64,000 nucleotides of DNA from NCBI GenBank assembly GCA_001643675.2, contig LSRY02000011.1, positions 434,001-498,000 of the forward strand. The letters are read 5' to 3'. The position numbers and the translations under genes were made by a program. The notes under the pieces are model-generated. The model did no database searches, was not told the DNA's origin, and was given only the letters and a program-made list of their open reading frames with translations. Below are positions 19,401 through 47,045 of the stretch, in pieces (the stretch's first letter is position 1; every line of letters begins with the position of its first letter). The stretch is from Monocercomonoides exilis PA203 (lineage: Eukaryota; Protista; Preaxostyla).

Positions 19401-22400
19401 CATATATCCAGATGCAGCGCATGTTGGGAAGGCAAAGAACAATCTGGGTGGATACAACTCGTGGTTCTGCGGATTTGATTATTATCCGTGTGCCACCATC
19501 ACGCATGCAGCGCAGGTGAGATATGCAGACACAAACAAGAACATTGAATTGGATTCAGGATTTGAGCTTGCGGAAGAGGTTGCAATGACTGGCGAATATG
19601 AATGGAAGGTGTTTTGTATCACAAAAGGGATGAAAGTGAGCGTGAAAACACCAGATAATATGGAATCCGAGTTCTTGATTGAGGTGCAGAGCGCGTGCAA
19701 AATGGAAAACATCAGATTTTCACTTCCAACAGAGCTGGAAGGAGTGAAATCACTGATTTCAGCCAACTCAACACTCCTCACGCTCACAGACTGTTCTGTT
19801 TGTTGCTCCTCAGAGAATACAGAAGGTGATGCAATTGGATACAGCTTTGTCAGGGCAATTGGAAGAAAGCTGAAAATGGAAGGTTTTGTGATTGAAGAAA
19901 GTTCACTATTTGGAGTGCACTCGTTGGTTGAGCTTGCAAGTGGTGTGGATGCTGTGGTGTGTGTGGGATGCAATGTGAGCAACGTTGAAAAGAGAAATGG
20001 AGATGGGGGATGGATGGATGGGGAAGTTGGGACAGAAAGAGATGAGGGAAAGAATGGGATAATTGTGATTGAAGGATGCAATGTCAAAGGGTGCAGCTGC
20101 TGTGGAAGAGGAGGGGGGATACATGCAAGTGTGAAAGGAGAAGGAAGTGTGGTAGTGAATGGGACGAGTGTGATTGATGGATGTGAAGCTAATGATTTTG
20201 GTGAAAGAGAAGGGAGAGGTGGAGGAATGATGGTTGAGATGGGAAGCAGAGATTGTGGATTGAAAATAGAGAGTGGTGTGAAGTTTTCAGTTGATGCAGA
20301 CAACATTGCAATGTTTGGGAAGGATGTGTTTGTTTGTTGCAACGCAGGGATATTGCTTGAGTCGAAAGTGAATGCAACTTCATTTGGATTTTTTGATGCA
20401 AGAGCCATTCCAACAGTTGTTTTGGAGCTGAGTGGGAGTGAGAGTGGGAATGAAGACGAAGTTATTCCATTGTTTGTGTATTTGTGTTCAATGGGATCAA
20501 AGCTGATTGTTGATGGGAGTGGAGAATGGTCATTGGACCACAGCCGATGTGGATTCGAGAAGTTTGGGTGTCTGACGATTGACTATTGTGTGAGTCAGAG
20601 AGCGAACATCAACATTCATGAAATCGAAGTTGCTTCTGTGTCTTCAATAAAGAATGAAATGAAAGTGGCTTCATGTGATGTGATCCTATCAGGGAAAAGA
20701 GAATCAGTGGAAGAAGAGAAGATGAGAGTGGAGGTGAGTGATGAAGGATCAGCAAACCAAGAAAGGTTTATTGAGTGCACAAGTTCACTTTCAGTCAACT
20801 ACATCTCTTTTTCTGTGGATTCTCCTCTGAAAAACGCAAGAAAAGCATTTATTTATTCATCGCTGTCAACACTCACAATCGCAAACTGCTCCATTTCATT
20901 TGCAGAGGAGGCACTGACAAATGGGATGATTGGATACAGCATTATTGACAAAAAAGGAGGGAAGCTGATTGTTGATGGATTTGTGATAGAAGAGGAAGTG
21001 ATGATGACAATGAATGGAATATCACCAATAACGATGAAAAATGGAACGGAACTGGAGATGAAGAACAGCAGAGTGAGTGGAGTGGAAGTGGCAGGTGGGA
21101 GTGGAGGAGGATGCTTGAACGTGGAAATCAATGAGATGGGGAATGCGAATATTGAAGGATGTAATTTGTCATCAAGATGCTCAGGTGGAAGTGGAATGAA
21201 AGGAGGAGGGGTGATGATATCTGTTGGAGAGAGAGGAACATTGAGAATGAAAAACGTGAAGTTTGATGGATGTGAAGTACCATCAATGGATAAAGAGGAA
21301 GGAGGAAGAGGAATTGGAGGAGGGATGTTTGTTGAGCTTCCTGAAGAGTTTGGATTATTTGTGCTTGAAGGAATGAAATTTGAAGGATGCAATGCCTGGA
21401 AAGGGAAGAATGTGTTTGTTTCAGGATGGGATCTGAGAGAGATTATGTCAAACGAACAACTGAAATGGGAGATGAATGAAGAGGAGTCAGAATCATTGGA
21501 TGAGTTGTGTGGATGGGAAAGGAAGACAACAGGAGAGGGATATGTGATTCCGCTTGTTGTGTATTTGTGGAGCAACTGGAGTGGGAATGGGTTTGTTTCG
21601 AAAGAGAAAGGAGGAGATTTCAGTGGGTGTGGATTTTCAGAAGCACCATGTTCATCGATTGACCATCTGAATGCCCTTCGATATTCAACACCTGGAGAAG
21701 GGGAAACACACATCAGCATTGTGGGATCAGGGCTGTTGAGCCATTCCATATCATTTTCTTTTATTTCATCATCAATTTTAGAGTCGCCAAAAGTGGTGAC
21801 TGAAGGGACAAAGAAAGGGACAGCTTTGATCGTAAGTGATGAAGATGAGAATGATCTGAATGATTGTTCAATGATATCATCGAATGTGAGCCTGTCATTT
21901 GTCAATGTCTCGTTCACCAAACCAACCATCACGACCCATCATGAAGTGTTTATTGAATCCTCTGGAACAAATTCATGTTTGACAATTGTTGATTGTTCAT
22001 TTGGTTCATTGACAGGGGTCACAGAGACAGCAGGATATTGCATGATAAGAGTGAATGGAGGGAGCGTTTTGATTGAGAGATGTTCTTTGAGAATGATTTC
22101 TGATTTGAAAGGGTTGATCTGTTTCAGCCCAAGTGCAACAGAGGTGACTGCTCAGAACGTGAACGTTTCATTTGCTGCTGTGAAGGAGAAAAGCCTAATT
22201 TCGATGTTTGAAGTCAGCAATGCAAATGGAAAAAGAAATGCACATATTAATAGCAATAAACCTGTTTTGAGGGTTGTTGGGTGCTCATTTGCAAATATCA
22301 CAAACGAAGAAAATGGAGCAGGTGTTATTGATGTGGGATCATTTGAGCATGGAGTGGAGTGTGTGATTGATGAGTGTTCGATGTCGAGTTGCAAGAGTGG

Positions 22401-25400
22401 TTTGAGCATCGAAGGAGGGGGAATGAGAGTGGCGTTAAAGAGTGGAGAATCAATTTTAAAAGTGAATGGCAGCTCTTTTTCAATGTGCAAGTGCTCAACT
22501 CAATCAGGGCGTGGTGGAGGGATGTATATTGATGGAGCAGACCCAAATATTAATTATGCAGTTGATTCTCAAATTCCTCCCCTTCGATTTAAAATAGCAA
22601 ATATCTTGTTTTCTTTGGATGAGGCATTTGTGGGAAACGATATTTTTGTTAGATGCAAATCGATTGCTCATCAGATCAACGAAACTCTGTTTGCTTTGAA
22701 CTACAATCAGGATTCTTTGAATTCAAACAACTCTATCTGCGGGAACGATTCAGAGGGAAACACTGATATAGATCTGATTCCGCTCATCACATTCTATTAT
22801 TCGGCACAGGTGTTTGTGAATTCAACAGGAACTGATGACAGGCAATGTGGAGCTCAGAGCAATCCATGTCTCAGCATCAACTGTGCTGTTGATCACATTC
22901 AAGAAGGAGTGATGAATGCGATTCTTATTGATGGAGAAGGGGCTGTGACAAAGGAATGCGTGATCGGGGATCTGGTTGTGAATTCACTCAAAAAGACACA
23001 GGCGATTGTGAAATTGAACTCCAAGATGGAGAAATCATCTGATAAGGATTGCATCATGGAGTTTATAAATGAATGTTCTGTGGAGAGATGCTCATTTCAG
23101 TTTGAAGAGACATTTGAGTCAACTCACAATTGCCTTATGAAAGTGAAGAACGGATCTATGGAGATACAAAAATGTGAATTCTGCTCAACCGAAACTGAAT
23201 TAAAAGTGAACAGTTCAATTGTGAATGTGGAAAGAGGAGAGCTGAGGATATTTGATTCAGCATTCAGGAATCTTCATTCATCGGCATCATTGCTTTCATT
23301 TTGTGAAGAGTCAAAAGTGGAAGTGGTTGAGATGTTTATCACAAACATTGAATGTGAAGGCGATGTGGTTGTGGTGGGAGGCAAAGCGAAAGTGGAGATG
23401 AAAGAAATAGCAGCCAATAATATTTCATTGATGAAAGGAGGAAGTGCAATGAAGATTGAAGGAATAGAAGAAGATGTGAGTGTTCTGAATTGCTCATTTG
23501 GCAAATGCACGAATTCGAAGGAGAAAGGAAGCATGGCTCAGATAAGAGAAGGCAGAGCAGTGAGGATTGAGGCATGCGTGTTTGACGGAGAAGGGAATGG
23601 AGAAGGGAGTGAAGAAACACATGAGAAAATGAACAGGAAGGAGATCTGTGGGTGGAATGGATCATTGGTTGATGTTGAAAATAGCAAAGTGGAGATGAAA
23701 GAAACAGCAATCAAAAATAGCAAAGTTGGTGGATTGTGGGTGAGTGGAGGTAGTTTGGCGATTGAAAATGGAAAGTTTGAGAACAACAATCCATTCATTG
23801 AGGGATATCCATCAGCTCGAAGGAATGCGATCTGCACAGGGAATGGCGAATTGAATGTTGTGAGTTTGAAAGGGGGAGATGGAATCGAGAAAAACACATC
23901 ACTTTGGATAATGGATGAAGGATGCAAATTGGGAGGGATTGCAGGAGAAAGAGCATCTCCCTTCTTTATTCCTGTTCTTGAAGATGTGCAGAATGCAACC
24001 AAGCCATCAGGCGAATTGAAGTTGATCATTCATGGGAAGCTGCTTCTGCCATGTGATTTGTCAGTGAAGATAAGCATGAAAGAAGGAGATGAAGAGGAAA
24101 TCGTGAGAAAAGGAATTGATGAAGAAGACTGTGTGTCAGAGAATGAAGTCCATTCAACAATTTCTTTGGAATTGCTCAAAGTGATGGAAACAAAAGCTGA
24201 AGCGAGCATGAGCATTCAATTTGGAAAATCCAATTTACCATCATTCACAGCAGAATTCATCCTGAAAAATAGAAGCGAAATTCAGCCCAAAGGAGATGAA
24301 AAACTTGTTGAAGGAGGAAATAAAGAGAAATCTTATTGGATGTTGATTGTGATTGTGATATTTGCTGTATTGTTTTTGATTGTTCTTGTTGTTGCAATAG
24401 CCTTTATTATTCGTTGGAAAAAAGCAAAGAATGAGAATAAAGATCTGAGAGAAATAGTAAATGATAACATCAGAAAAGATCCGAAGGCATTTGAGATGGT
24501 GACAATGGAGATGTCTCCAGAGGAGCAATGGAGGAGAGCAGAGAGAGAGGCAGAGAAGAAGAATGAAGAGAGGATAAAGATGGGAGTGTATGCGAAAAGC
24601 TTGGGACACTCAGAGTCATCACAGTATCTGCTGGCTGAAAGTGGCTCCACAGAATACATCCTTGGAAGAGATTCAGACAAGATTCCTCAATGGATGCTGG
24701 AGAAAATCGATGAGAAAGAGATCGAGTACGAAATGAGAAAACGAACACCATCACCTTCCATCTCATCCACTTCAACCACAGACACTTCAGATTCAGATTC
24801 AACATTTGTTCGAGGAGAGGATCTGTGCCCAACCACTTCATCAATGTCGAACTTGGTGGATGCAATGGCCTGCTCATCTCCTCATGAGAAGCTGATTGTG
24901 GATCTGCGAGATTCATTATTCATGTTGCTTCATGGAAGGAATGAGAAGAAAGAGATGGCAATTGGCACTCTGCAGGAGAGGGAGATGACAGCTGCCCAGA
25001 TCATGTTCTGGGTGGCAAATCTCGCTCTCCACTCTTTCGATGAGATGGAAAATCCACTCCAATCTCTTGCCAATTTGAGTCCTCACATTGTGCTCTTCTC
25101 AGAGCATATGGTCATCTGCATTGTGATGCACTCGGATTTATCTTCTGATGATTCTGATTCTTCATCCATCTCATCCTCCACCATTATCACTTCCTCATCT
25201 GATGATTCAACCATCAATAAGAATGGCAGAGGCTCACCACCGCCATCTTCAGCATTTGAGGAAGAGGATGACTTCAAAAAAGAGTGTTTGAGGTGGAAGG
25301 CGCCTGAGCTGCTGAATGGCGCAAAGACGCATGCAACGAAGAAGACTGTTGCATTCTCGATTGGGATGATGCTGTGGGAGTGCCTGACGCTGCAGATCCC

Positions 25401-25686
25401 GTTTGGGGAGTATGAGGCTGTGGTTGCAGGAGATAAGATTGTGAGAGGAGAAAGGCCCGACACAAGCAAGACGATTGAGACGAGCTATTGCGAAGTGATA
25501 AAGGAGTGCCTTTCGGTTGACCGAAAAGAGAGGCCGACGCTGGTCGGGCTGAAGCGGGAGTTCATTGGGCATTTCCCAGCAGGCACAGTCATGCTCACCG
25601 TGTCTGATGCAATCGACTATGAAGCAGTCAGCTTTGTTGAGGATCAAAGGCTGTCCACTGGGCAGATGATGAGCTCGGAGCAGTGA
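16435..25686 (+). CDS. Giant intronless single-pass receptor-like pseudokinase (Cys-rich beta-helix/Pmp-like ectodomain, TM, degenerate TKL-like domain), 3083 aa
   Basis: N-terminal hydrophobic leader; GGA(I/V)/GGG + FxxC repeats; five CGxxxx(P/G)Cx(T/S)(I/V) modules; TM YWMLIVIVIFAVLFLIVLVVAIAFII followed by RWKK. Kinase C-lobe motifs RWKAPEL, AFSIGMMLWECLTLQIPF and ERPT are present, but GxGxxG, HRD and DFG are not. Confidence 0.88.
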   Translation: MVKMLLISIAFLLTERKILCQDFCESAGFEVICTSNNFNYEKFFPAQRNRFPNEGLRSKISGSIRSELSSSSHKKITKENEVTERKVFENEKSKEGGLPECKKDCNLKNQGQIIDRPSTILKEFNSKEGECLIKGCFDLKNASVGWSGLELVSVNGKSAICGTEGSRAALRGCSVVMSCGVPLFEMHESYALLENITLQSSNPLSNEIPPLFSSKGTINKASNKSHLSVRFSCFSSFCISSAPFLASPLIESVSLADLIFFNISTKPSDCSSLTASIYKTQCFMQSCSFSSVCDVYDGGIVPSLNNPLASLTASNTSFVGCCRTSNVEHIGTEEEKKHPGRINETDNGANTFTWCEWIGSNTTGTDETWQDGISSGGAISMYGHPNGELSVSHCDFNNCYAYSRGGAVLCHSIKSININNNTFNACTAQHQEGGGIHAYLISTCVLISRCEFQNCESNHNGGGLYLDCFQASRTECFEAEVGEEENAYIFDCNFSTCSVTNNHGGGMYCRSVPAAQFKMRSIQFILCSAQSHGGGLSFYPNGTTTPTDKIFCCFLSFHKCECRESLIPLGHDSEYSDSFNLYLDSDNPFYECCTTNTDDRRVCYAYNYSNSGDWIYDQTSKKSWLKDKTIYVSVNGNDEYELCGTNESYPCLTVKKAVEMCEIQLALSVTLMEGNHASETETINIGEKKISVIGKGRTESSIGTGALSSVGTLFSVTTGNLGLLRMKVDCNSNASPSSPSVVVVSDGSGSLSLEDVVITTSVSSGNVISSSVFVVSLSQLSMVDVEIINMNVSKPLFSEPDLPSFSLSSSSFFLAGTESTESILANVNVKNVKLTNGDGVVVAKSVKEGETFVVKNVTIEDCECEDGSGGGIKVDLSSSSSKLRAGTSSTPEGEATKFNRCKCSGYGGGMMLHLADSSFDFSIYTVDFEGCTASLGGNYLFVNGKDSKNWGITTEKLNIENDNSKFNELVGWDRSDTTMGQFPLNVFLDIYPDAAHVGKAKNNLGGYNSWFCGFDYYPCATITHAAQVRYADTNKNIELDSGFELAEEVAMTGEYEWKVFCITKGMKVSVKTPDNMESEFLIEVQSACKMENIRFSLPTELEGVKSLISANSTLLTLTDCSVCCSSENTEGDAIGYSFVRAIGRKLKMEGFVIEESSLFGVHSLVELASGVDAVVCVGCNVSNVEKRNGDGGWMDGEVGTERDEGKNGIIVIEGCNVKGCSCCGRGGGIHASVKGEGSVVVNGTSVIDGCEANDFGEREGRGGGMMVEMGSRDCGLKIESGVKFSVDADNIAMFGKDVFVCCNAGILLESKVNATSFGFFDARAIPTVVLELSGSESGNEDEVIPLFVYLCSMGSKLIVDGSGEWSLDHSRCGFEKFGCLTIDYCVSQRANINIHEIEVASVSSIKNEMKVASCDVILSGKRESVEEEKMRVEVSDEGSANQERFIECTSSLSVNYISFSVDSPLKNARKAFIYSSLSTLTIANCSISFAEEALTNGMIGYSIIDKKGGKLIVDGFVIEEEVMMTMNGISPITMKNGTELEMKNSRVSGVEVAGGSGGGCLNVEINEMGNANIEGCNLSSRCSGGSGMKGGGVMISVGERGTLRMKNVKFDGCEVPSMDKEEGGRGIGGGMFVELPEEFGLFVLEGMKFEGCNAWKGKNVFVSGWDLREIMSNEQLKWEMNEEESESLDELCGWERKTTGEGYVIPLVVYLWSNWSGNGFVSKEKGGDFSGCGFSEAPCSSIDHLNALRYSTPGEGETHISIVGSGLLSHSISFSFISSSILESPKVVTEGTKKGTALIVSDEDENDLNDCSMISSNVSLSFVNVSFTKPTITTHHEVFIESSGTNSCLTIVDCSFGSLTGVTETAGYCMIRVNGGSVLIERCSLRMISDLKGLICFSPSATEVTAQNVNVSFAAVKEKSLISMFEVSNANGKRNAHINSNKPVLRVVGCSFANITNEENGAGVIDVGSFEHGVECVIDECSMSSCKSGLSIEGGGMRVALKSGESILKVNGSSFSMCKCSTQSGRGGGMYIDGADPNINYAVDSQIPPLRFKIANILFSLDEAFVGNDIFVRCKSIAHQINETLFALNYNQDSLNSNNSICGNDSEGNTDIDLIPLITFYYSAQVFVNSTGTDDRQCGAQSNPCLSINCAVDHIQEGVMNAILIDGEGAVTKECVIGDLVVNSLKKTQAIVKLNSKMEKSSDKDCIMEFINECSVERCSFQFEETFESTHNCLMKVKNGSMEIQKCEFCSTETELKVNSSIVNVERGELRIFDSAFRNLHSSASLLSFCEESKVEVVEMFITNIECEGDVVVVGGKAKVEMKEIAANNISLMKGGSAMKIEGIEEDVSVLNCSFGKCTNSKEKGSMAQIREGRAVRIEACVFDGEGNGEGSEETHEKMNRKEICGWNGSLVDVENSKVEMKETAIKNSKVGGLWVSGGSLAIENGKFENNNPFIEGYPSARRNAICTGNGELNVVSLKGGDGIEKNTSLWIMDEGCKLGGIAGERASPFFIPVLEDVQNATKPSGELKLIIHGKLLLPCDLSVKISMKEGDEEEIVRKGIDEEDCVSENEVHSTISLELLKVMETKAEASMSIQFGKSNLPSFTAEFILKNRSEIQPKGDEKLVEGGNKEKSYWMLIVIVIFAVLFLIVLVVAIAFIIRWKKAKNENKDLREIVNDNIRKDPKAFEMVTMEMSPEEQWRRAEREAEKKNEERIKMGVYAKSLGHSESSQYLLAESGSTEYILGRDSDKIPQWMLEKIDEKEIEYEMRKRTPSPSISSTSTTDTSDSDSTFVRGEDLCPTTSSMSNLVDAMACSSPHEKLIVDLRDSLFMLLHGRNEKKEMAIGTLQEREMTAAQIMFWVANLALHSFDEMENPLQSLANLSPHIVLFSEHMVICIVMHSDLSSDDSDSSSISSSTIITSSSDDSTINKNGRGSPPPSSAFEEEDDFKKECLRWKAPELLNGAKTHATKKTVAFSIGMMLWECLTLQIPFGEYEAVVAGDKIVRGERPDTSKTIETSYCEVIKECLSVDRKERPTLVGLKREFIGHFPAGTVMLTVSDAIDYEAVSFVEDQRLSTGQMMSSEQ

Positions 25687-29584: not shown

Positions 29585-32500
29585 TCAGTTTATTTTCAGC
29601 TTATCAATCAATGATAAAAACTTTTCTTGCAATTCTTTTGGTAATGTTTGAATTATTGAAGCTGAACGATTCAAAAATATGGAAAAAGCAATTGCAAATT
29701 CAACCCATCCTCCTTCCTTGAATTCGTTCAGCATCCATTCCAATTCTGTTTCCTCAGAGCAAAAAGCATTGCAGTCGTCATCAAAAAGGTTGGACATCCA
29801 TCCTTCCTTTAAAATCTTTCTCCTCATTTTGTACTCATCAAACAAAATTTTCGTATGCTTGCTGTTCTGCACATGTGAACAGTCGCTGATAATTAGCTCA
29901 GTTTTATCTTCGGCTTCTTGATCTGAATCAAAAGGCTCATTCATAAATGAAAGACCAGCAGCATTAGCCTCTCGTTCTTTTTCCAAAGCGTCCATCCAAA
30001 ATGAATTTGTGTTCGTTGAAAGAGTTGAAATAGACATATCGGAGCATCCGTTTTCAAATGGGTAGCGAGGAATCCACCATTTGAGAATATCTCTCAGAAT
30101 GCAATCAATTGGCATTCCTGTTATGTTCCATTTATCCTTAAAGTGTTCTTTTTCTTTGATTGTTATTTCATCTCTTTGAGCAATTTGAGTGTGATGTTCG
30201 TTGTCATTTATCTCAGAGGAAAGCAATGAAAGCATTTTGTGAAGAGGAAAGTCGATAAGTTTGCAGAAAAAGTACAATGGACGGTATTTACGCTTTCGCA
30301 ATAAAATTTCAACTGCGCAACATACAACCAATGTGCAATCTGCACATATCTAAAATAAAAAGAAGAAGAAACAACGATTATTTGCATCCAAAAAATCAGA
30401 TAATTTGAAAAAACAAAACATCAATATTTGAATATTTTGCAAGTAAAATACAAACCTCTAATTTTTTTGGTAAATAGTCAGTCAACAAAATGTGTGTGTG
30501 ATTATTTGACATTCCAATTTTACTGCTGACAATCATCCACAAAAGTTGTGTATTTGATTGAAAGTCTGTTTGCTTTGATTCCTTTTTCTTTTTCTCTCCA
30601 ATCGGAGTCTTAAAATCTCTCAAATCAGTCTTTGTATTATCTCCATCAAAAGTTGAATCGATGGCATTTCCTCTTTCAATTTCTTTTCCGCTCTCCTTCT
30701 GTTCGTCCTCTAACCATTGTATTCCTGATCCTCGAATTACATAGCGCGTTAGTCCAACAAGCGAGGCATAATCTTCCTTCTCCAAACACTCGCACGCAAC
30801 AGCAACGGCAATAGAAGCAGCACATGAAAAGGAAAAGCATTCATCAAAGAACCGAATGGTGTGACTGAGAGATTTGGTATCGTTCTCATTCAATGACCAC
30901 AAGCACATCGAAACAAGTCCGTTGATTGAAGAAAACGTGAAAGAGCCATCTTTCAGTTCTTTATTTAGTTCATTTGTCTGATTTTGCACAGGAGATGAAC
31001 TTGAAACGTTCGAGTTCTGATAACAAATTTTCTTTAAAATTGAAATCACTGCTTGTTGATTTGCTGAAAATGAACATTGCTTTCCTTTTTTCTCTAGAAC
31101 AGACGTTTGAGACTCATCTCTTTTGAGTCCTGTTCTTCTCATCGAATCTTGTTTTCCTTCAAACGAGCTATCACAGAAGATTGCAGAAGGAGAAGGAATG
31201 CACAACTGCAGGAACGGATTTTCACTTGCGATTCTGCTTATAAGAGATAGCAAAGGTGGCCAATTTGAAGGTGCAAGTCGACGTAAAGAGTCGATAAGTA
31301 TTGTATGCGCATCGTTAAATAAGCAAAGAAAAGAAATTGTAGTCAGAAGTGAAGGAATGCATTGAGCTTGATTGATTTGAGATTCATGCGACAATTCGAT
31401 GTCCGTCCACATATCATTCTCATTATCTTTGCAAGCATCAATTGTCGCTTTGTCAGAACAGTTACTTGTGTACGGCTTGCATTCATTTGGTGTTGAAGAA
31501 TTATAAAAATCGCGAATGGCATCTTCAGTTAACAGCACATCATCCATCTTTAAATTGTTGCTTGAGAACGCAGCATCACTCCATTTCTGTTTTGTAGCTC
31601 GGTTTTCGTTTAACTTTTGTACGGTCTTGTTTTGATTATTTTTGCAAACTGTGTTAAAGTGAATAACAGCCGAAAGTACTTCCATCAATAGCTTTTGTCT
31701 GAATTCACTTGCATTCAACCATTCATTGCACACTCCACTCTGGCACCCTGTGCGATAAGGTGAGACTGTCAATGAAAACGCAGCCAATATAGCTTGTATC
31801 AAAGGAAAATAATCAGTCATTTCATCTTTTCCTGAGTTGATTGACTTCAATTGTGAATTTTGCAGCAGAAGAGCGTGTTGGATAAGGAGATGGTACAAAG
31901 AAAGAGGCCGGAGGGCAAATTGATGGGGACGGGACAAAACAGACGGAACAGAAGCAGGATTATAAAAGCAGCAGTCTGATTGCTGGGCATCTTGTGGGGC
32001 ACTTCCAGCAGCAAAAGGCTGGCGAGACAGATGCTGCTGCATCAAATGAGCACACGGCCTATTTGTAGAAGTCTCAGCTGTGATGAAGATGGATGACTGC
32101 ATCAGACAAAGCGGTGCCTGTGACTTCACTTGCGAAGGGAACATGATGTCAAAGTTGACACACCCGCTGTCTGCAGTTGCTTCAAGTGACGGCTTAATCA
32201 TCCAAGTAGTAACTCCCATTTCATCGTCTTCCTTTTGTTTTTTGCTTATGTTCGCTTTCATGGCTTCTGAAAGTAACCAATCAAAGCTATCTTCACTTTC
32301 ATAGTTATCGGCTAGATAATCGCTGTATATTGTGCAATCATCTTCCATCGCACTTCCACACAAGTTGCGATTGACAATGGCTCTGTTTCTGCATTCAATT
32401 GCCCATAGCTGAGTATTCGCCAAGCAGCACCAGGCAGCAACAGAACTGAGCATAACAGCCTTGTTGGTTGAGGTGTCGATGAGTGCAAGAGACGAATCAG

Positions 32501-35500
32501 CACAGCGCACAACAAACACATGTGGTCTCTGGCGGACAATGACAGCAGTTGGCAGCGGAGAACTGACAGCAGCAGAAGCAGTCAGAAGACTCGAAGTTGC
32601 TTGCGGGGAATTGACAGGAGTTTGTATTGCTGTTTGGTGCTGGTGCTGTTTTGTGCTTGCAGATGCTAATTGTGTAGAAGAGGCGGAGTGAGAAAGAGGA
32701 GACGGGGCAGGAGACAATGAAGAAGGAGAAAGCGATGAAGGAGAAAAGAATCGTTTGAGACGAGTCGCAAATGGAGTGCTTGAATCCTTCGGTGTTTTCT
32801 TTTCCTTTTTGTGCTTTTTGTCATCAGTCGGTGGAGTTGAAAGCGGAGTTGGGGGCGAAGAAGCTGTGTGCGATTTGTGCAAGTTCGAAGGGCGTTTGGG
32901 AGTTGTCAGTGTGGAAGATTGGGTCGAAAGTGACTGAGCTTGTCGAGTCTCTGTTGCCGATGTTAGCGGAGATGAAAGAGGATTTCTTGCATTTCTTTGA
33001 GTTGTGGTTGATGAAGGCATTTGGATGGCTGGTTGTTCTTTTGAAGGGACGGAATTGTCGCTTACAAGCACAAAACCAGATCGTTCCGCTAAGCCTGTGT
33101 CTCTCTGAAAAGTAATTGGTGTCAAGCCTGGGTGAATTGGAGTGGCGCTGACAATAAATGACTTCAGACGGTTATTTGTTTTTCGCTTGCAATCGTTTGA
33201 TTTGCTCGTCATTTCTATATCGAGTGAAGGGAAAGTGAGTCTGCGTAAATTCACAATAACCCGCTTCCCATTCACCACAACACCTGATCTTGTTCTGTCT
33301 CTTTCTCTTTCGTCTTCGCCCAGCTTCTCGATTGATATGGACACTGCAAATGGTTGAATGAAGGTGATTGGCAAAAAGGAAGAGGAAGAATCAGACTGGG
33401 AAGAAGAAGATGATGATGATGACGACGACGAACCAGTTTGACTGTCAATAAGCATCTGAGGTGTAACAGCGTCTGAGCGAAGGACGATGTTGAAGTGCTT
33501 TTCGTCTGGGCACACAGACAAAGAAAGAGGCGCAAAATGCGATGGAAGCGGGGCGACTGCATGCGATCGATAGGAAGCAGGAAGAAGAAGCGGATCTTTT
33601 AAGTGGGAATGCGAAGAGGCTGAATGAGAGGCAGAAGAAGCCGAAGAAGACAAGGCAGAGGCAGTCTGATGAGACGAGCGAGAGAAAGAAGAGAGCGAAA
33701 TGCGGCGCGAGTCGTCAATCGCCTTCCGCGTCAGAAGAAGTGGAATGAACACCACGTGAATGAAGAAGTCCTCGTTGGACTCTTTTGCCTTTTCTGCAGA
33801 GGCCAAAGAAGAATACAGAATGGAAGACTGAGCAGATGAAGCAGGAGAAGGCGGAAGGGACGAAGAAGAACGCGAAGGAGAAGAAAGAACGACAGGCGGA
33901 ACAGAAAGAGAAGATGGAGTGAATGGACGCCTTGGTGTGGTCTCAATATCAGCAGAAGCAGGGAAAGAATAGAGGGAATCGCCCATTGTCTTGCTGGTGG
34001 TGACTGTTGAAAGAGGTGATGGAGAAAAAGTGGATGAGGAAGAAAGAGAGGAGAGCACTGAAGAAGAAGAAGAGGAGGAGGAGGACAATGAGGAAGAGGA
34101 AGAAGAAGAAGATGATGATGATCCTGTATGCGATCTTGTCTTCTTCTTCTTTGTGGTTGTGACGAGGATCAAGATGTCGTCGCTCAGCCACTCGGCGCTG
34201 ATGATGCAGTCGTTTTCGAGAGAGGTGAACCACATCCATCTGCCCTCTCTCCACTGCTGAGAGGAACACGAGGACAAAAGAAGAGACTGGGCTGATGCAG
34301 GGGCACTGAGTGACTGTGAAGTGGGAAGAGAGGAAGAAGAAGAGGAAGAGGTAGAAGAGGTAGAAGAGGAAGAAGAAGAAGAAGAAGGAAGACGTGATGA
34401 AGTGTTGCTTTGACTCATATCTTTCTTTCCGATGTACAAAGCAACGCCTCCATCGCCGATGACTGAGAACGAAGAGAGAGAAGAAGAAGAAGAAACAAAC
34501 TGGATGCGGCGAAGAAGGAAGATGAAAGGGCGAGGAATACACAGAGAAGCAAAAGCGTTTGATATGACGGCAGATGAGTGGGGGAGTGAGGGAAGTGGCT
34601 GAGATGGAGAGTGGAATGTGATTTTGTTGTTGAGTGTGTTGTTGTTGTTGTTGTTGTAAAGTGAGGTGAATGACTGAAATGTAGACGAAGTGATTGGAGA
34701 AGGTTCCTTCTGCAGTGACTTGATGAATGAAAGCAAGGGCTCGTTGGCTGCAGAGGATGTGTTCTGATAGGGCTGAAGAGAAGGGAAGGCCAAGTAAATG
34801 TGCTGTGAGTCAAAGAAGCAGGCAGCATCGCGTGGCTGGCAGATGGCGGTGGAGGAAAGAGAGGCGCCGGCGGACGAAAAGGAAGACGTCCAGAGGCCTT
34901 CCACTTCGACAAAGCAGCCCTTCAGAAAGGAAGCGGTGGAGAGGAGGAGAAGAGAAGACGAGGAATGCACCCAGATTGCAGAGACGACAGAAGAAGGAAG
35001 CTTTCTGGTTGAATTGGATTTTTTGGGTCTGTTTGAAATTTGATTGGATGAGTTTTTTTGTTGCAAATTATTGTGTGATTTATCGTTTGAACTTTCAATC
35101 AATTGTCCTGTTTCTGTTATTTTTTCTCCTTCTGTGCAACTACTTCCATTTATGCATTCATCATCATCATCATCATCGCATTCTTTTTCTTCACTCCATT
35201 CAGCAGCCTCGTCTTCATCAGCATCATCGTTTCCAGTGGCCATAATGTTCTGTGACAAGATGCTTATGCACTCACCGTCGATGACAGATGCCCCGTGGCT
35301 GCAGGCAAAGCCAACAGCGATGGACGAGACGAGAGGAAGCGGATGGATAGGCGGAATGGCACAGCGAGAGGGAAACACAAAGAAAGAGGAGGAGTCTGAA
35401 GATGATTTTTGTGGAGAAGATAAGAATTTGCAGGAAGAAGAAGATGAGGAGGAGGAGGAAGAAGATAATGAAGAAGAATCTTGTTCAGATGATGTGTCTT

Positions 35501-38337
35501 GTGGTTTGTGAGATGAAAGCGAAGGTAAGTGATATGCTTCGAAAGGGGTGGGAAACAAAGGAGGCGGAGAAGAAGAAGGAGAAAAAGGTGTTGTGGAGCG
35601 AGAAGGAGAATTTGAAGCAATCGGAAAAGAAGAAGAAGAATATGATGATGACAATAACATAGAATTGGTAGAAGAGGAAGAAGAAGAAGAAATGGAATGC
35701 ACAAAAGGTGATGAATTTGAAGTGCCTGTTGAGAGGGCAGAGAAAGAAGAGTTCGAATGAAGAGACAGACACGAGGGAGACATCACCAGTTGCTGTGTGG
35801 CTGAATCAAAAGACTGCATCGAAGAAGACTTTGAAATGGTGTCGTTTGTAAAAGAAGAAACGGAATTAGTCTGTGGAATTGAAGAAGAAGAGGAGGAGGA
35901 GGAAGAAGAAGAAGAAGAAGAAATAGAAGAAGTGGCATAATATGAAAGAGCAGATGAATTGACAGAAGCAGCAGAAGGAGAGACAGAGTCCGCATTGCGC
36001 GAAAACGAAGGAGAAGAAGGCGGCGAAGGCGAAGAAGAAGGGGAATCTGGAAGAAGAATCACAGAAGGAGATGGAAGGGCGTTACTATTCAGAATTGAGG
36101 AATGGTATGCATTTTGAGAGGTTTGCTTGTCTGCTGCTGCTGTTTCAGAGGGAGAAAAGAGTTTTGTGTTTTTGAGAGGAGTTGGAGTGCTGATGAAAAT
36201 GTTGTTTCTGTTTGAAGTTGATTGAGAAAATGTGTCTGATGAAGAAGATTGAGGAATGATTGGCGAGGAAAGAAGAGAAGATCTGGCAGGCGAGCTGAAA
36301 GAGAGGGAGGAATAAGAAGAGACAAGAGTTGATAGATTGGATGGCTTTGAAGAAGAAGCAGAAGAAGAAGAAGAAAGAACGGTTTCTGAAAAAGAAGAAG
36401 AAGATGATGATGATGATGATGAAGTTAAAGATGAAGTGGAGGAAGAAGATGAAGAAGATGTGAGAGAAGAAGAGGAAGATGTACCAAGAAGAGAAGGCAA
36501 AGGAAGATTAGGAACAGGATTAAGTATGATCGGGTTATATGAAGAGATAAATGTTGAAATGGGCATAGAATCAGAAAGTGCATAAGATGAAAGTGGCAAA
36601 GAAGAGGAGGAAGAGGAGGAAGATAAAGATAAAGAAGACGATGACGATGATGAAGATAAGGAAGAGGATGAGGAAGAAGAAGAGAAAGAAGAGGAGGAAG
36701 AGGAAGAAGAAGATGAAGATGACAAAAAAGGTACAGTTGAAAGAGATGGGCATTGTGACAGGAATTTCATTTCAAAAGGCTCAGTGGAGAATGACAGAGA
36801 AGTGATGGTGTATGAGTTTCTGTGGTGAATGTCGTCATCAGGGCACAAATCAATAGAGCGAACATAACTCGGGGCAAATGGCTTAAGAAATGGAGACAGC
36901 AGAGGCTGGATGAATGATTTGATGCATGATATCATGTAGTCTTCTGAAGAAGAGAGAGAAGAAGAAGAAAAAGAAGAAGAAGAATTTGATTCTGTTGTCA
37001 ACGCAAAAGGAGAAGGAGCAGCGCTTTCCGGCAGATCTGCCGGTGGCAATGTTGAAGAATTGCATGTCTTGTTTGTGCGCTCCTTCTGGTTTGAATCTCC
37101 CCACGAGACAACAAAACGTGTCCACTCGCTCATCGCATACAGCGACACAACGCCATCAGCACTTCCAACAATCACGCGATGGAGTGATGATGAGAAGCGA
37201 ATGGATGTCAGTCGCTTAAAAGCACATGGAAATGAGGTTAACGGTCGACGAGTAGGCATTTTGTGCATTTGTTGGATGGAGTCCCAACTGTCTGAGGAAA
37301 CTGGCATGTTGGATGTGTTCATAGCTTGCTGCAATGAAGAACATAAAAATTCTGACAGTGTAGCTAATTCCTCGCGAGATATAAGAGGAAATGCGATGCA
37401 ATGAGGAGAAGCTTGTGGATAGCAAAAAGAAGAGGTCTGAGTCGAGGAAATTGAACGTCTTTGTTGTTGAGCTGTTCCTGAAGATACATGTTCATTTGAT
37501 TCAATTTCAACTTCCTTCGAAATAGTGACACGGTACGGTTGAAGGTCGTGTGGATGAGAAATTAGTTCAGTAAGTGGATAAACAAACGCTAATCCGCAAT
37601 TAGTAATAATCCCCAACGAGTTCATTCCTATTCCGCACGAAATTTTTGAAATTCCGCATTTTTCTTCATCCAATTTATTTTCGTAAAAAAATTGAGAATG
37701 AGAAAAACAATGAAAACAAAGAGATTGCGATAAATTAATGTATAAAGTTGGTGTTGAAGAGTTCCAACGCACAAAAGAAATTCCAAGAGATGATGAATGT
37801 CCAACAAGAAATCCTTTTCCAGCATTGCATATGCAACAGCCAAAAGGAATTTGAAGACATTGCATGTGTTGAATAGCAATTTGATATTTCATTTGCGCTA
37901 AGGCATGACTACGAGCAGTTGATGAAGATGCAAAATGCTCCATACTTATAAATGATGATGGTCCTCTTCCAGTCGGATCTTTTGAAGTAATGACATATTG
38001 ATCGATTATTCCTGAGTTCGTCTATTATTATGTTATTAATTAAGAAAAATGTTAAAAGATAAAAGAAATCTCAATGCGATAAAAAGCATACAATAACGGC
38101 AATCATCTTTCCATCAGAACTCCAAGCAAACTCCTTATTTCCCTTTGAACTCCAAATTTCTTGAGCTGTTCTTTTTAATGTACAAAGGATAGAACGTGGG
38201 GTATCAGTGGTCCAAATTGAAATGCTTGATTTTGTCAAAATTGCAAATAAACGACATGTTGGACATTCTTCGACTTGCAAAGGTGTCTCGTTTTCCGGAA
38301 GTGAATGAAAAGAAGAACATCCAATTGCATAAAACAT
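29585..38337 (-). CDS. RIC1: RIC1 (Rab6/Ypt6 GEF subunit) homolog, ~2858 aa; exons 38337-38092, 38021-30456, 30349-29585
   Basis: N-terminus MFYAIG...LFAILTKSSISIW...LKRT...FAWSSDGKMIAVI|TNSGII follows the RIC1 start (MYF..GWP...FAVL...LSIW...W.PD..MIAV.T..G). C-terminal LEWMLNEFKEGGWVEFAIAFSIFLN resembles the RIC1 C-terminal region. Two phase-0 GT-AG introns join three ORFs. Confidence 0.75.
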
Positions 38338-43457: not shown

Positions 43458-45443
43458 TTATTCTATATCCTTTGCATTGTCAATTTCCACCATTTTTGTC
43501 TCTTTATCATTATTTGTGGATTCAATGTTGGATTTTTTATTTTCTTTAAAATTTTCCACTTTTTTCCCATATGTATCAGAAATGCTCTTTGATGGACTTT
43601 TAAAATAAGATTCTTCATCTAATCCTTCAAGAATTATTTCGTTGTCTGCCATCGTAATTAAATTTGTGTTTTCAATTGATTTATCATCTGAACATTCCAT
43701 TTTCTTTTCTTCTATTACAATTTCACCTTCTTCAGGATCAGAAGAAAGTTCAATTGGCAAAATAGCTTTTTCTGCTTCTTTCGAGTTTTTTGATTTTTGT
43801 CGTTCTCTTCGGAGTTTGCCAGAACCTAATATTTTCACATCGTCCTCAAATTCTGGGGAAATAATATCAATCTCACTCAATTCTTTTGTTTGAACATTTA
43901 TTGCAGCATCATCTATATTTGTCGGATCATCAGATAATGTTATTACACTAACTTGATCAAATTCTGAAGGAATTGGAGAGAAGCAGCCCTCAACCGCTGC
44001 CGATGGCGAAAGAACAGGTCTTTCTGAAATAAAAGAAGATGACCTCTCTTCAAAAGAACATTTGCGCTCAGTAGAAGAACACGAATTAGACGTAAAGGCA
44101 TTCGGCACCCAATGCGATGCACGATATCCAAGCGAAGATGGATTGTCATTGCATTCATCTGATATTAATGAAGAAAGAAATGCATCAGGATCAAACGAAG
44201 ACAATATATCATCTGTGAATGGAGGGACAAAAGGAGATTCTATGCGAATGCGCTCTCCAGCAGGAGAATGTTGTGATCTACTTGAAAATGATGGAGAAGG
44301 CTTTGATGCTGGAGAAGATGAGTTTGCTGGAGAACTGGAGTGCTGACGTGAATGTAAACTCTCAGAACAAGGCGATGTTTTTGCGGAGTAGATGCGATGC
44401 AGCTTTTGAGGAGCAGACTGATGTTTACTGGAATAATAGTCTCTTTTCCTTTCATCGTCATCATCTTTCAAATATCTAGTCGAACTTGAACTATCTGCTG
44501 ATCTCTCGCGCCAGCTTGATTTTGACCTTTCAGAAACTGACCTCCCGCTGTCTGACCTTCCTGATCTGGATGATCCATCTTGCCAACTTTGATCATAGTC
44601 TTTTCTGCTCCCATAGCGATCTCCATCGTAATGACTTGAATAGTCGCTTTTCCTCTTTGCCCATTGGCTGTGCGGGTCTGACTTGCTTGACCCTGGGCCA
44701 TAACGCTGCTCATCTTCAGAATCTCTTTCCAGTTTCCTGTCACGAATGCGCTCGGATTCAAATCTTCCATAATCTCTATATCTCCTTTCATTTCTATCAT
44801 TTCTCTCGTCTTTTCCCCTTCTCCAGTCTCTCCTTTCTTCCATTTCTTCTCGTTTTTCAAAATGATCTCGACTACGTTGATAGCTTTGCTCCATTTCACT
44901 ATCTGTATCATATTCAGATCTTGATTCATAATCTTTGCGTCCTCTTTCTTCTGGGCGATACATTTGGCGATTCCGTCTTTCTGCTTTTAATTCTGCTTCA
45001 ACAGAAAAATCAGAAAATGGACTTCTTTGGTCATATTTCTTACGGAGCATGATTCGTTCATCAAGCGTTATTAAATGCTTGTAATCAGCGTCTGAATCAA
45101 ATTTGCATTCACTTTCGTAATTATTCGCAGAATCTATTTTTTTATCTTCAAATTCATCTGAAACATCTTTCGAATAAGTAAAACGAGGCAGAAGTTGATA
45201 AATAGCCATTAGACGTTTTTCTATCAATAAACATATTTCATCTCTCCTTTGTTGCTTTTGTTTTTCTTCTTCTTTCTTGGAAATTTCAAACTCAGCTGAA
45301 ATATTGTTATTTGAGTTATTATCTTCTTCAATATTAGAATTGCAAATAATTCCAGTTTCAGATTTTTTAATTGGCATAAATTTGTTTGTTGCAGCATCTT
45401 CCTTATTTTTAAGAACGCATTTATTTTCCACGAATAATTGCAT
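43458..45443 (-). CDS. Hypothetical Arg/Asp/Ser-rich low-complexity protein (661 aa; may have upstream exons)
   Basis: Long ORF with an RD/RE/RS dipeptide-rich centre and an acidic tail. No recognisable domain. Confidence 0.7.
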   Translation of the reverse strand: MQLFVENKCVLKNKEDAATNKFMPIKKSETGIICNSNIEEDNNSNNNISAEFEISKKEEEKQKQQRRDEICLLIEKRLMAIYQLLPRFTYSKDVSDEFEDKKIDSANNYESECKFDSDADYKHLITLDERIMLRKKYDQRSPFSDFSVEAELKAERRNRQMYRPEERGRKDYESRSEYDTDSEMEQSYQRSRDHFEKREEMEERRDWRRGKDERNDRNERRYRDYGRFESERIRDRKLERDSEDEQRYGPGSSKSDPHSQWAKRKSDYSSHYDGDRYGSRKDYDQSWQDGSSRSGRSDSGRSVSERSKSSWRERSADSSSSTRYLKDDDDERKRDYYSSKHQSAPQKLHRIYSAKTSPCSESLHSRQHSSSPANSSSPASKPSPSFSSRSQHSPAGERIRIESPFVPPFTDDILSSFDPDAFLSSLISDECNDNPSSLGYRASHWVPNAFTSNSCSSTERKCSFEERSSSFISERPVLSPSAAVEGCFSPIPSEFDQVSVITLSDDPTNIDDAAINVQTKELSEIDIISPEFEDDVKILGSGKLRRERQKSKNSKEAEKAILPIELSSDPEEGEIVIEEKKMECSDDKSIENTNLITMADNEIILEGLDEESYFKSPSKSISDTYGKKVENFKENKKSNIESTNNDKETKMVEIDNAKDIE

Positions 45444-45964
45444 TTTATCATGAAATTTCAGATAATAATAATTCTAAAAAAACAAAGATATTACAAAACC
45501 TCCATCCCCTTAAAATAAATTAAAATGGCTCAAAAATTCGATAAAAAACTTTTTATGTTGACTTTAAAGTTCCCCAAAGCCAATCTTTATTCGATCTTAC
45601 CCTTTCATTCATAAAAAAGATGAAGCACTCTCCAATCAGAATTGTGGAAAATCGCAATTTTTTCATTAAACCTAAATAAATGTGCATTTATAAAAAAAAT
45701 TTGAGCAAACAATTGCAAAACAATTCAAAAGGCTAAATTATTTTTTTTAATTTATCAATTTCAAAAAAACAGAAAAAAAGAAAAATGTTCATTGATGGCT
45801 CAATATAAAAAGAGTCATCTCAAAAATAATATCCGCATTATACATGAAATAATCATAAAACATGCTCATGCTAAAATATCAGAACAACTAATAATAAAAA
45901 AAATGTCAATTATCAATGTTTGATTCCGTTTTTTTGCTGAAATGAAATTGCAAAAAAACGTTTT

Positions 45965-46303
45965 CTATAAGATATTACAACAGCCACTACTTTTTTTCTT
46001 TGGTGAAGAAGCACGTGTCTCTCTGTCATTGCCTCCTTTTGATTTATATTTATCCATGATAGCTTGAGTTTTTTTGCTTTGTTAACATAAAAGAGATAAC
46101 AATTTTAATTTGAAAAAAATGTTGTATTATATCAACTCCAATTTTTACGGAAAAAACCTTCGTTTATCTTTTGCTTTGACAATTGGTTTTGGTGGTGAAT
46201 CTTCTCTAATCACAGGACGCTCTTCATCCTTTTCATCTCCAAGAATACCTGTCTTGGCTTTTTTTAAAGCTTGCCCAGCGACAAGCTTCGCAGCAAAATT
46301 CAT
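45965..46303 (-). CDS. Complexin-like prenylated protein, 85 aa; exons 46303-46158 and 46076-45965
   Basis: One 81-nt GT-AG intron (it contains an in-frame TAA) gives MNFAAKLVAGQALKKAKTGILGDEKDEERPVIREDSPPKPIVKAKDKRSKKTQAIMDKYKSKGGNDRETRASSPKKKSSGCCNIL. It ends in a polybasic patch plus CaaX. Confidence 0.65.
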
Positions 46304-46372
46304 AAAATATGTGGATAATTAAATAATGGTTAGGAACAATTACTAAATACACATATTATTATTGTTACATAC

Positions 46373-47045
46373 ATGTTTATTCATTTCATTGTTTTTTGAA
46401 AGCCTTCGAAAACAAATATGGCAATGATCATTTAATCAATGTTATTGTTTTTGATTTTTGATGCTTTAATACAAAGCAGTTTGCGAATTTATATAGAATT
46501 TATAATCCTTAAAAAATCTTTGAAAATTGCTATATTTCATTTGCTTTTTGTCTCAAAACTTTCGATTTATTAAATCAGGTTATTCTATTAATTGTACTGC
46601 GTCAACGGATATTGGCAGTTGTACGCAATCACGATTCTGCATATGGTGTAAAAAAGCCATTAGTGTTTGATACAAAATTCTATTTCATTTTTCTCCCCAA
46701 ACAGAATTTTATTTCAACAAACAAATTTTAATTTAAACAAAATTTGACTTTTCAATTTAACAGGTAAATGGGAAATCACCTGAAATTCCAATGTGTCTAT
46801 TCGGTATAAAATTATTTGAAAAAATTACATTGTTTTTTCACAAAGTATTGTTTATTTTAGGAGGACAATACGGAGCTGATCCAGGCAATGAATATACATG
46901 CAAATACAATGAAAGCTTATGGCTATCAAAAACGGTCACACTTCCAATATTTGTTTTGATTACCGTTTTAGTATTCTTTGCTGGATTTGCAATTTGTGAA
47001 GGAATTCTTTTGTTGGTTTGCATGAAGTGTAAAAAGAAGAAGTAA
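46373..47045 (+). CDS. Small Cys-rich single-pass membrane protein (PSI/PTTG1IP-like), several exons; 5' end uncertain
   Basis: Exons give INCTASTDIGSCTQSRFCIWC, PEIPMCLF and GGQYG...C...TVTLPIFVLITVLVFFAGFAICEGILLLVCMKCKKKK. The first exon needs one extra T in a T6 run to be in frame. Confidence 0.5.

Follow-up and report, generated by a model that had tools for sequence, protein, structure and literature searches.

The gene considered here lies on the reverse strand of the window (the whole stretch of 64,000 nucleotides that was analyzed), where the database holds the record MONOS_10703, an "uncharacterized protein" of Monocercomonoides exilis with a length of 85 amino acids. The initial annotation had attributed the DNA to an oxymonad-like host lineage, and the species to which this database protein belongs agrees with that. 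It had also termed the gene hidden because a plain listing of open reading frames (ORFs) breaks it into fragments of 52 and 30 amino acids. The listing indeed gives only these two pieces, but the annotation of the genome already contains the gene. Exon 1 (46158..46303, reverse strand) comprises codons 1-48 and two bases of the Ser49 codon, as supported by translation, RNA contigs, and identity to residues 1-48 of the database protein; its frame (46303-46160 plus two bases) translates as MNF...KDKR. After a phase 2 intron of 81 nt with GT..AG ends (46077..46157), exon 2 (45965..46076; translation and RNA contigs) supplies the last base of Ser49, residues 50-85, and a TAG stop at 45965-45967. 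Read in frame from 46075, it yields KKTQAIMDKY...GCCNIL followed by the stop. The database protein consists of both exon translations, joined by the serine codon that the intron splits.

This two-exon model, including the intron at 46157-46077, had been proposed from the letters of the sequence and is corroborated by RNA. Four metatranscriptome runs each contain one assembled contig that maps to 45732/45807..46076 and then to 46158..46304/46309 with zero mismatches. Exactly 81 bases (46077-46157) are absent from the contigs of all four runs, and their ends read CT..AC on the plus strand, i.e., GT..AG on the gene strand. The contigs measure 418-497 nt and come from runs of one study, so they count as a single source, and the expression level is not readable from them. 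The contig of run X1 stops at 46309 (the other runs at 46304-46306), giving a minimum 5' UTR of 46304..46309 (reverse strand), and extends on the other side to 45732, giving a 3' UTR of at least 233 nt (45732..45964, reverse strand). A six-frame profile search of the M. exilis genome with the family profile described below matches this locus only, so there is no paralogue. In short, MONOS_10703 is a real, spliced, transcribed, single-copy gene.

A few observations concern its surroundings. A plus-strand RNA contig of run X3, within 46445-46600, is spliced at 46478|46579 (GT..AG, 100 nt) and has no ORF assigned; it points to a second small spliced transcript that diverges from MONOS_10703, ~140 nt upstream of the start codon of the latter. 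On its downstream side, MONOS_10703 is followed directly by a 661-amino-acid ORF of the same orientation (43458-45443, reverse strand) that is rich in Ser, Arg, Asp, and Glu and belongs to no Pfam family. Elsewhere in the window, there are giant open frames of 3083 amino acids (16435-25686, forward strand) and 2515 amino acids (30396-37943, reverse strand), both in stretches with strong GC skew. Searching eight large neighboring ORFs against Pfam returned only a partial protein-kinase domain (residues 2947-3042, at the end of the 3083-amino-acid ORF), with zero matches for the 2515-amino-acid ORF.

The protein is a succession of short segments, all encoded on the reverse strand, and the motif order proposed for it (MxFxxK, acidic stretch, Pro-rich linker, Q-x-I-x-D-K-Y, and CaaX) is present in full. 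Residues 1-22 (MNFAAKLVAGQALKKAKTGILG; 46238..46303) make up an N-terminal amphipathic segment that aligns with the N-terminal domain of complexin in hhalign and contains an AF2 helix at residues 5-19. Next comes an acidic stretch (residues 23-28, DEKDEE; 46220..46237), which has its counterpart in an E/D run in the alignments of all orthologues. The Pro-rich linker (residues 29-40, RPVIREDSPPKP; 46184..46219) had been suggested to stand in place of the accessory helix of complexin, which fits the absence of an AF2 helix there and the gaps or poorly matched columns in hhalign. Downstream of the intron, the T52-Q-A-I-M-D-K-Y59 motif (46046..46069) aligns with R63-Q-G-I-R-D-K-Y70 of complexin in both hhalign and HMMER and falls within a second AF2 helix (residues 50-60). 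The chain ends in Cys-Cys-Asn-Ile-Leu (45968..45982), read in the sequence as a CaaX box, C82-N-I-L (X = Leu), with the adjacent Cys81.

When modeled by AF2 with the family alignment, MONOS_10703 has a low mean pLDDT of 58.5 and shows these two helices only. According to this low-confidence model, the N-terminal helix is amphipathic, the second one is short and basic, and the protein is otherwise largely disordered; such a two-helix, otherwise disordered chain suits a complexin-type protein. Lipidation is predicted from the Cys/CaaX motif. A profile search shows that M. exilis encodes four genomic loci with prenyltransferase beta-subunit domains, plus ICMT; with machinery for prenylation and CaaX methylation thus encoded, geranylgeranylation of a CaaX box that has Leu as its last residue is plausible.

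MONOS_10703 belongs to a family that is conserved across oxymonads. Its members were collected by phmmer over 1.84 billion representative proteins, after which a profile search (hmmsearch) added a further lineage. The orthologue of Streblomastix strix (EZS28_024449, 86 amino acids) was found by phmmer at E 1.8e-10, and that of Blattamonas nauphoetae is BLNAU_16609, with 104 amino acids. Two uncultured oxymonad-like copies are represented by a 116-amino-acid protein call on an ENA metagenome contig (L003) and a 58-amino-acid protein call on a Logan contig (L004). One phmmer match of 2238 amino acids was set aside as low complexity. For the alignments, the M. exilis, Streblomastix, and Blattamonas sequences were used as full-length database proteins, and the two environmental copies as separate exon pieces.

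All family members follow the same order: an N-terminal segment, an acidic run, a Pro-rich linker, a basic stretch with the motif, a variable basic tail, and a Cys end. The N-terminus aligns as M-x-(x)-(F/I/Y)-(A/V)-(A/S)-K-(L/F), with the M-x-(x)-F-x-x-K start in four of the five lineages (that of Blattamonas is divergent). A lack of conservation of the DKY helix in related oxymonads had been named beforehand as an outcome that would speak against the complexin proposal; in the alignments, TQAI(M/I)DKY is invariant across the five lineages. Every full-length copy closes with a Cys cluster or CaaX box, namely CCNIL in M. exilis and Streblomastix, CDCVIF in Blattamonas, and CCCV.. (CCCVCANPL...) and CCCCVCHF in the environmental copies. 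Place and phase of the intron are identical in all genomic copies that were read (M. exilis, Streblomastix, and the two environmental ones, Blattamonas being left out), the intron falling after K-R/K-H and two bases of the following codon.

In the Streblomastix gene (SNRW01008139.1:2841-3165), TAA and TAG stand in frame at Gln positions of the database protein and TGA serves as the stop, which directly displays, in a tiny gene, the non-standard genetic code that this oxymonad uses. These codons identify it as a resident gene rather than host contamination, and together with the common intron they show that its residence predates the separation of these genera. The environmental copies also illustrate a systematic error of metagenome protein sets, in which small protist genes with introns are called wrongly. 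In the first, a 42-nt intron without a stop (L003:290-331) was read through by the gene caller, adding 14 false residues. The protein call of the second consists of exon 1 and intron read-through (L004:939-990), and its true second exon lies at L004:992-1111. In both copies, GTTTGT occurs right after the Cys codons (L003:430-488 and L004:1088-1114); it could be a further 5' splice site, which makes the true C-termini of these two copies uncertain.

Complexin regulates membrane fusion and has so far been described from animals and their nearest unicellular relatives. Complexin-1 binds antiparallel in the syntaxin/synaptobrevin groove through its central helix (48-70), where R48, Y52, R59, R63, K69, and Y70 matter for SNARE binding. 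The vertebrate complexins-3/4 attach to membranes through a C-terminal CaaX motif and have a MAF..K...G.QLK N-terminus. By description, they resemble the oxymonad family in both respects and differ from it in being farnesylated and in having the full accessory and central helices. Complexins-1/2 of vertebrates, on the other hand, have the full R48/Y52/R59/R63/K69/Y70 interface and bind membranes through an amphipathic C-terminal region rather than a lipid anchor.

The origin of complexin has been placed in unicellular holozoans (PMC13454271, PMC9750855). A 2026 paper argues that the original role of complexin was to stimulate exocytosis without synaptotagmin, by means of the central helix together with an element at the C-terminus that binds membranes, and cites Monosiga brevicollis, a unicellular organism without synaptotagmin that has a complexin, as the deepest known occurrence (PMC13454271). 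The Monosiga complexin, known here from its description, is holozoan and recognizable, whereas the oxymonad family comes from outside Opisthokonta and escapes detection by HMMER.

To obtain a reference set, we used a degenerate DNA pattern encoding M-R-Q-x-I-R-D-K-Y to search a metagenome collection, which gave 53 loci, ~30 of them full-length metatranscriptome complexin cDNAs. Fifteen complexins were aligned, and a profile search then added 120 named bilaterian complexins; all are of bilaterian type. A close likeness exists to the invertebrate CaaX complexins of arthropods and mollusks. These share with the oxymonad family the N-terminal pattern M-a-x-F-(I/V)-A-K-Q...G..L..VKG..GGD, the Q-x-I-x-D-K-Y helix, a small size, and a mostly disordered chain, and 13 of the 15 aligned complexins have a C-x-x-x end, comparable to the Cys/CaaX end of the oxymonad proteins. 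The differences are no less clear. The oxymonad proteins are shorter (85-104 vs. 130-160 amino acids) and lack both the accessory helix and the E/R/K-rich N-terminal half of the central helix. The predicted DKY helix of MONOS_10703 spans ~11 residues instead of the ~23 in complexin. The X of their CaaX box is Leu or Phe (geranylgeranyl type), whereas the invertebrate complexins have Gln, Met, or Thr. At the N-terminus, the fish-type complexins L042 and L045 start with MNFVMK and the M. exilis protein with MNFAAK. Some metatranscriptome complexins have atypical N-termini (MVSLLTGGLLGG... and MMMLKMMNPFGS...; L051:312-788, L052:887-1288, and L057:86-547), and this, to judge from their sequences, shows that the N-terminal domain varies even among animal-type complexins.

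Aligned by hhalign against the 15 complexins, the oxymonad family reaches Prob 90.9, P 1.1e-6, and a score of 40.4; against 12 non-redundant complexins, these values become Prob 93.3, P 2.7e-7, and 43.8, and with the three full-length database proteins alone as the query, the probability is 85.9%. The alignment sets family residues 1-69 on complexin 1-82, with both N-termini at residue 1 and TQAIMDKY on MRQxIRDKY. Composition does not explain this match, since 600 column shuffles (300 each for template and query) score at most 17.2, with means near 10 and an SD of 2; the reversed alignments score 12.4 and 10.6. Taken separately, the N-terminal block (28 columns) scores 24.6 against its complexin counterpart (P 3.4e-6; shuffles up to 12.6) and the central block 17.5 (P 8.7e-4; shuffles up to 13.9), and the cross-comparisons of N-terminus with helix and helix with N-terminus give no match. 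P improves from 3e-3 to 5e-2 with single sequences to 3e-7 with the family profile, and such a climb is the behavior expected of true relatives.

The reciprocal direction agrees. On 124 real complexins, the scores of the oxymonad HMM average 9.2 bits and go up to 24.2 bits; on shuffled complexins they average -4.0 bits, with the 99th percentile at 3.8 and the highest score at 12 bits. Of the real sequences, 90% exceed that percentile. The best matches are bivalve complexins (24.2 bits, with a per-sequence P of 1.9e-9, and 23.2 bits), and the alignments are end-anchored and in register. In a language-model search of the ESM Atlas (7.7 million clusters), a Synaphin cluster came first for MONOS_10703, and Synaphin clusters took the top three places for the Streblomastix orthologue; the scores of 0.75-0.80 serve as a lead only, and a third of shuffled proteins reach 0.80. 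At the profile-profile level, the resemblance to complexin is, by these sequence comparisons, statistically real.

Single-sequence and family-membership tests gave a different picture. At E<=10, the Pfam Synaphin model (PF05835, gathering threshold 27 bits) matches neither MONOS_10703, nor either of its exons, nor six family members or pieces, so the scoring against the Synaphin HMM that had been proposed as a check failed, and by this standard test the protein does not belong to PF05835. Against the six-frame M. exilis genome, PF05835 and a profile based on the 15 complexins both found nothing, the controls for PF05835 being silent as well. A phmmer search of PDB sequences with MONOS_10703 returned no complexin, just a chance match to TFIIE. 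With the family profile, seven of 177,635 PDB sequences match at E<=10, and complexin-1 (5w5c chain E, Cpx1 1-83), the only complexin in the PDB that the profile reaches, is the seventh (E 6.8), outranked by chance matches such as ribosomal protein S4 and COP9 subunit 1. PDB searches with N-terminal-only or helix-only profiles did not pick out complexin, and their matches (EF1-gamma, glucosidase II beta, and SufU) were discarded as chance. G-protein gamma subunits, SVIP, SERF, and the small effectors of Cdc42 were set apart as dissimilar to MONOS_10703.

The complexin HMM, in turn, gives the single MONOS_10703 sequence 8.3 bits, a score reached by 12 of 3000 shuffles, and is not significant for the Blattamonas orthologue. 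The Streblomastix orthologue receives 13 bits with an alignment that is out of register, indicating how easily a K/E/R/D-rich sequence slides. Moreover, resemblance to complexin was the reason for picking this ORF in the first place, and the P-values are affected by that selection. Had MONOS_10703 been put to a search of all families, a P of ~3e-7 would mean an E of ~0.005, which is good but not overwhelming.

At the level of individual residues, only part of the SNARE-binding interface has a counterpart. The claim that the important positions of the central helix are kept stands for the equivalents of Q64, I66, D68, K69, and Y70, which are invariant in the family, and the predicted replacement of R63 by Thr is likewise seen. 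It is weaker for R59, as the match to R48 of MONOS_10703 rests on an ungapped alignment, in which this position is R or K in four family copies and His in Streblomastix. The R67 equivalent is Met/Ile, and the R48/Y52 half of the complexin interface is replaced by prolines.

Weighing all this, we consider the MONOS_10703 family to be probably a divergent relative of complexin. It appears to have kept three complexin elements in their order, first the amphipathic segment at the N-terminus, next the C-terminal half of the central helix, and last a lipid-anchor motif at the C-terminus. Our confidence is raised by features that lie outside the alignment score, i.e., the Met1-anchored alignments, the conservation of the same residues, the small size, and the C-terminal anchor motif. 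The explanation that we favor overall, with somewhat more conviction than doubt, is that of a distant complexin relative that is putatively lipid-anchored, SNARE-docking, and free of an accessory helix. Geranylgeranylation of the CaaX box (X = Leu), possibly with acylation of the neighboring Cys, would hold the protein on a membrane. Its short basic DKY helix could then dock in the Qa/R groove of a SNARE bundle that is already assembled or still forming, after which the N-terminal helix would promote fusion. Without an accessory helix, the effect would be stimulation rather than clamping, and the membrane tethering may compensate for the short, weaker SNARE interface. The binding to SNAREs is putative, as is the sense in which fusion would be affected.

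The SNAREs of the same genome provide some context. The whole single-exon SNAREs are what we take, by motif reading, to be a syntaxin-16-like Qa and a Sec22-like R, a non-cognate pair. In the plasma-membrane-type syntaxin candidate SynPM (C17) and the VAMP7 paralogues, the SNARE motifs are interrupted by introns. Five of the six VAMP7-type R-SNARE matches start their final exon at positions 23-24 of the Pfam Synaptobrevin model (C11:497839-498003, C2:1065480-1065647, C24:882734-882904, C25:539345-539530, and C11:1461129-1461308), with the zero-layer Arg (DR(I/V)L(D/V)RQEK...) following a few residues later; this looks like a common intron position across an expanded set of VAMP7 paralogues. 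A Ykt6-like R-SNARE exon (C43:98381-98542) ends in ...KKLNGCC at the stop of its open frame, although the gene may run on into another exon; judging from this exon end, lipid-anchored SNAREs exist in the M. exilis genome.

How a complexin-like protein came to be in oxymonads can be explained in several ways, and these have to be weighed together. Oxymonads are gut symbionts of animals, and the family is found only in them, which leaves room for uptake from a host as well as for convergence. More precisely, the phmmer scan of 1.84 billion representative proteins, which is insensitive for so short a protein, recovered no family copy outside oxymonads and two unassigned environmental contigs. This restriction is one reason to give serious, if minority, weight to a reading in which MONOS_10703 is an oxymonad-specific, small, lipid-anchored, disordered protein that resembles complexin by convergence or chance and whose partner need not be the SNARE complex. 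The silence of the Synaphin model speaks for it too, as do the weak single-sequence HMM scores (one of them mis-registered in K/E/R/D-rich sequence), a signal carried by just ~25 residues, and the loss of half of the known SNARE-contacting residues. It has to contend with two separate blocks that match their counterparts in order, anchored at residue 1 and far above composition-preserving nulls, with the coincidence between the residues conserved in oxymonads and those conserved in complexins, and with a reciprocal HMM test that separates real from shuffled complexins; the C-terminal lipid-anchor motif and the small size add features that no alignment score includes. That the ORF is a chance one in a spliced non-coding or UTR-like transcript, with no functional protein behind it, might be suspected from its shortness and the low AF2 confidence, but we find it hardly credible, as reading frame, intron phase, and motifs are kept at 35-50% identity across at least five lineages, one of which uses a different genetic code.

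If the homology to complexin is true, its source may be either a host or a common ancestor. The three named carriers are all oxymonads, which live as gut symbionts of animals, and the phmmer scan found no copy beyond these and the two unassigned environmental contigs. Complexin is otherwise holozoan (PMC13454271). An oxymonad ancestor could have acquired a true complexin homologue from its animal host, followed by fast divergence and with the same function as proposed above. The common oxymonad intron and the Gln codons of Streblomastix require any such transfer to be old, the distance to every animal complexin is so great that HMMER does not detect the relationship, and the sequence is too short for a tree; we rate this scenario as improbable. 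Vertical descent, for its part, would place a clamp-less, lipid-anchored complexin in the ancestor of Metamonada and Opisthokonta, near the last eukaryotic common ancestor, with loss or divergence in most lineages and a later, holozoan addition of the accessory helix and clamping. This we put forward tentatively, as a possible but rather unlikely history.

The sequence of MONOS_10703 was already in the annotation; in the literature that we found, no paper links complexin to Monocercomonoides or metamonads and none names MONOS_10703. Very small disordered regulators can stay labeled "uncharacterized protein" because family HMMs miss them. Far from animals, the oxymonad family presents a minimal layout, with an N-terminal helix, half a central helix, a lipid-anchor motif, and no clamp helix. 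That layout matches the role argued for the original complexin, which relies on a central helix and a C-terminal membrane-binding element (PMC13454271). If these proteins bind SNAREs, then either complexin-type SNARE regulation would be much older, or a gut protist would have taken a regulator from its host, or the motifs would have arisen twice. MONOS_10703 would also offer a natural "minimal complexin" for dissecting which parts suffice to facilitate fusion.
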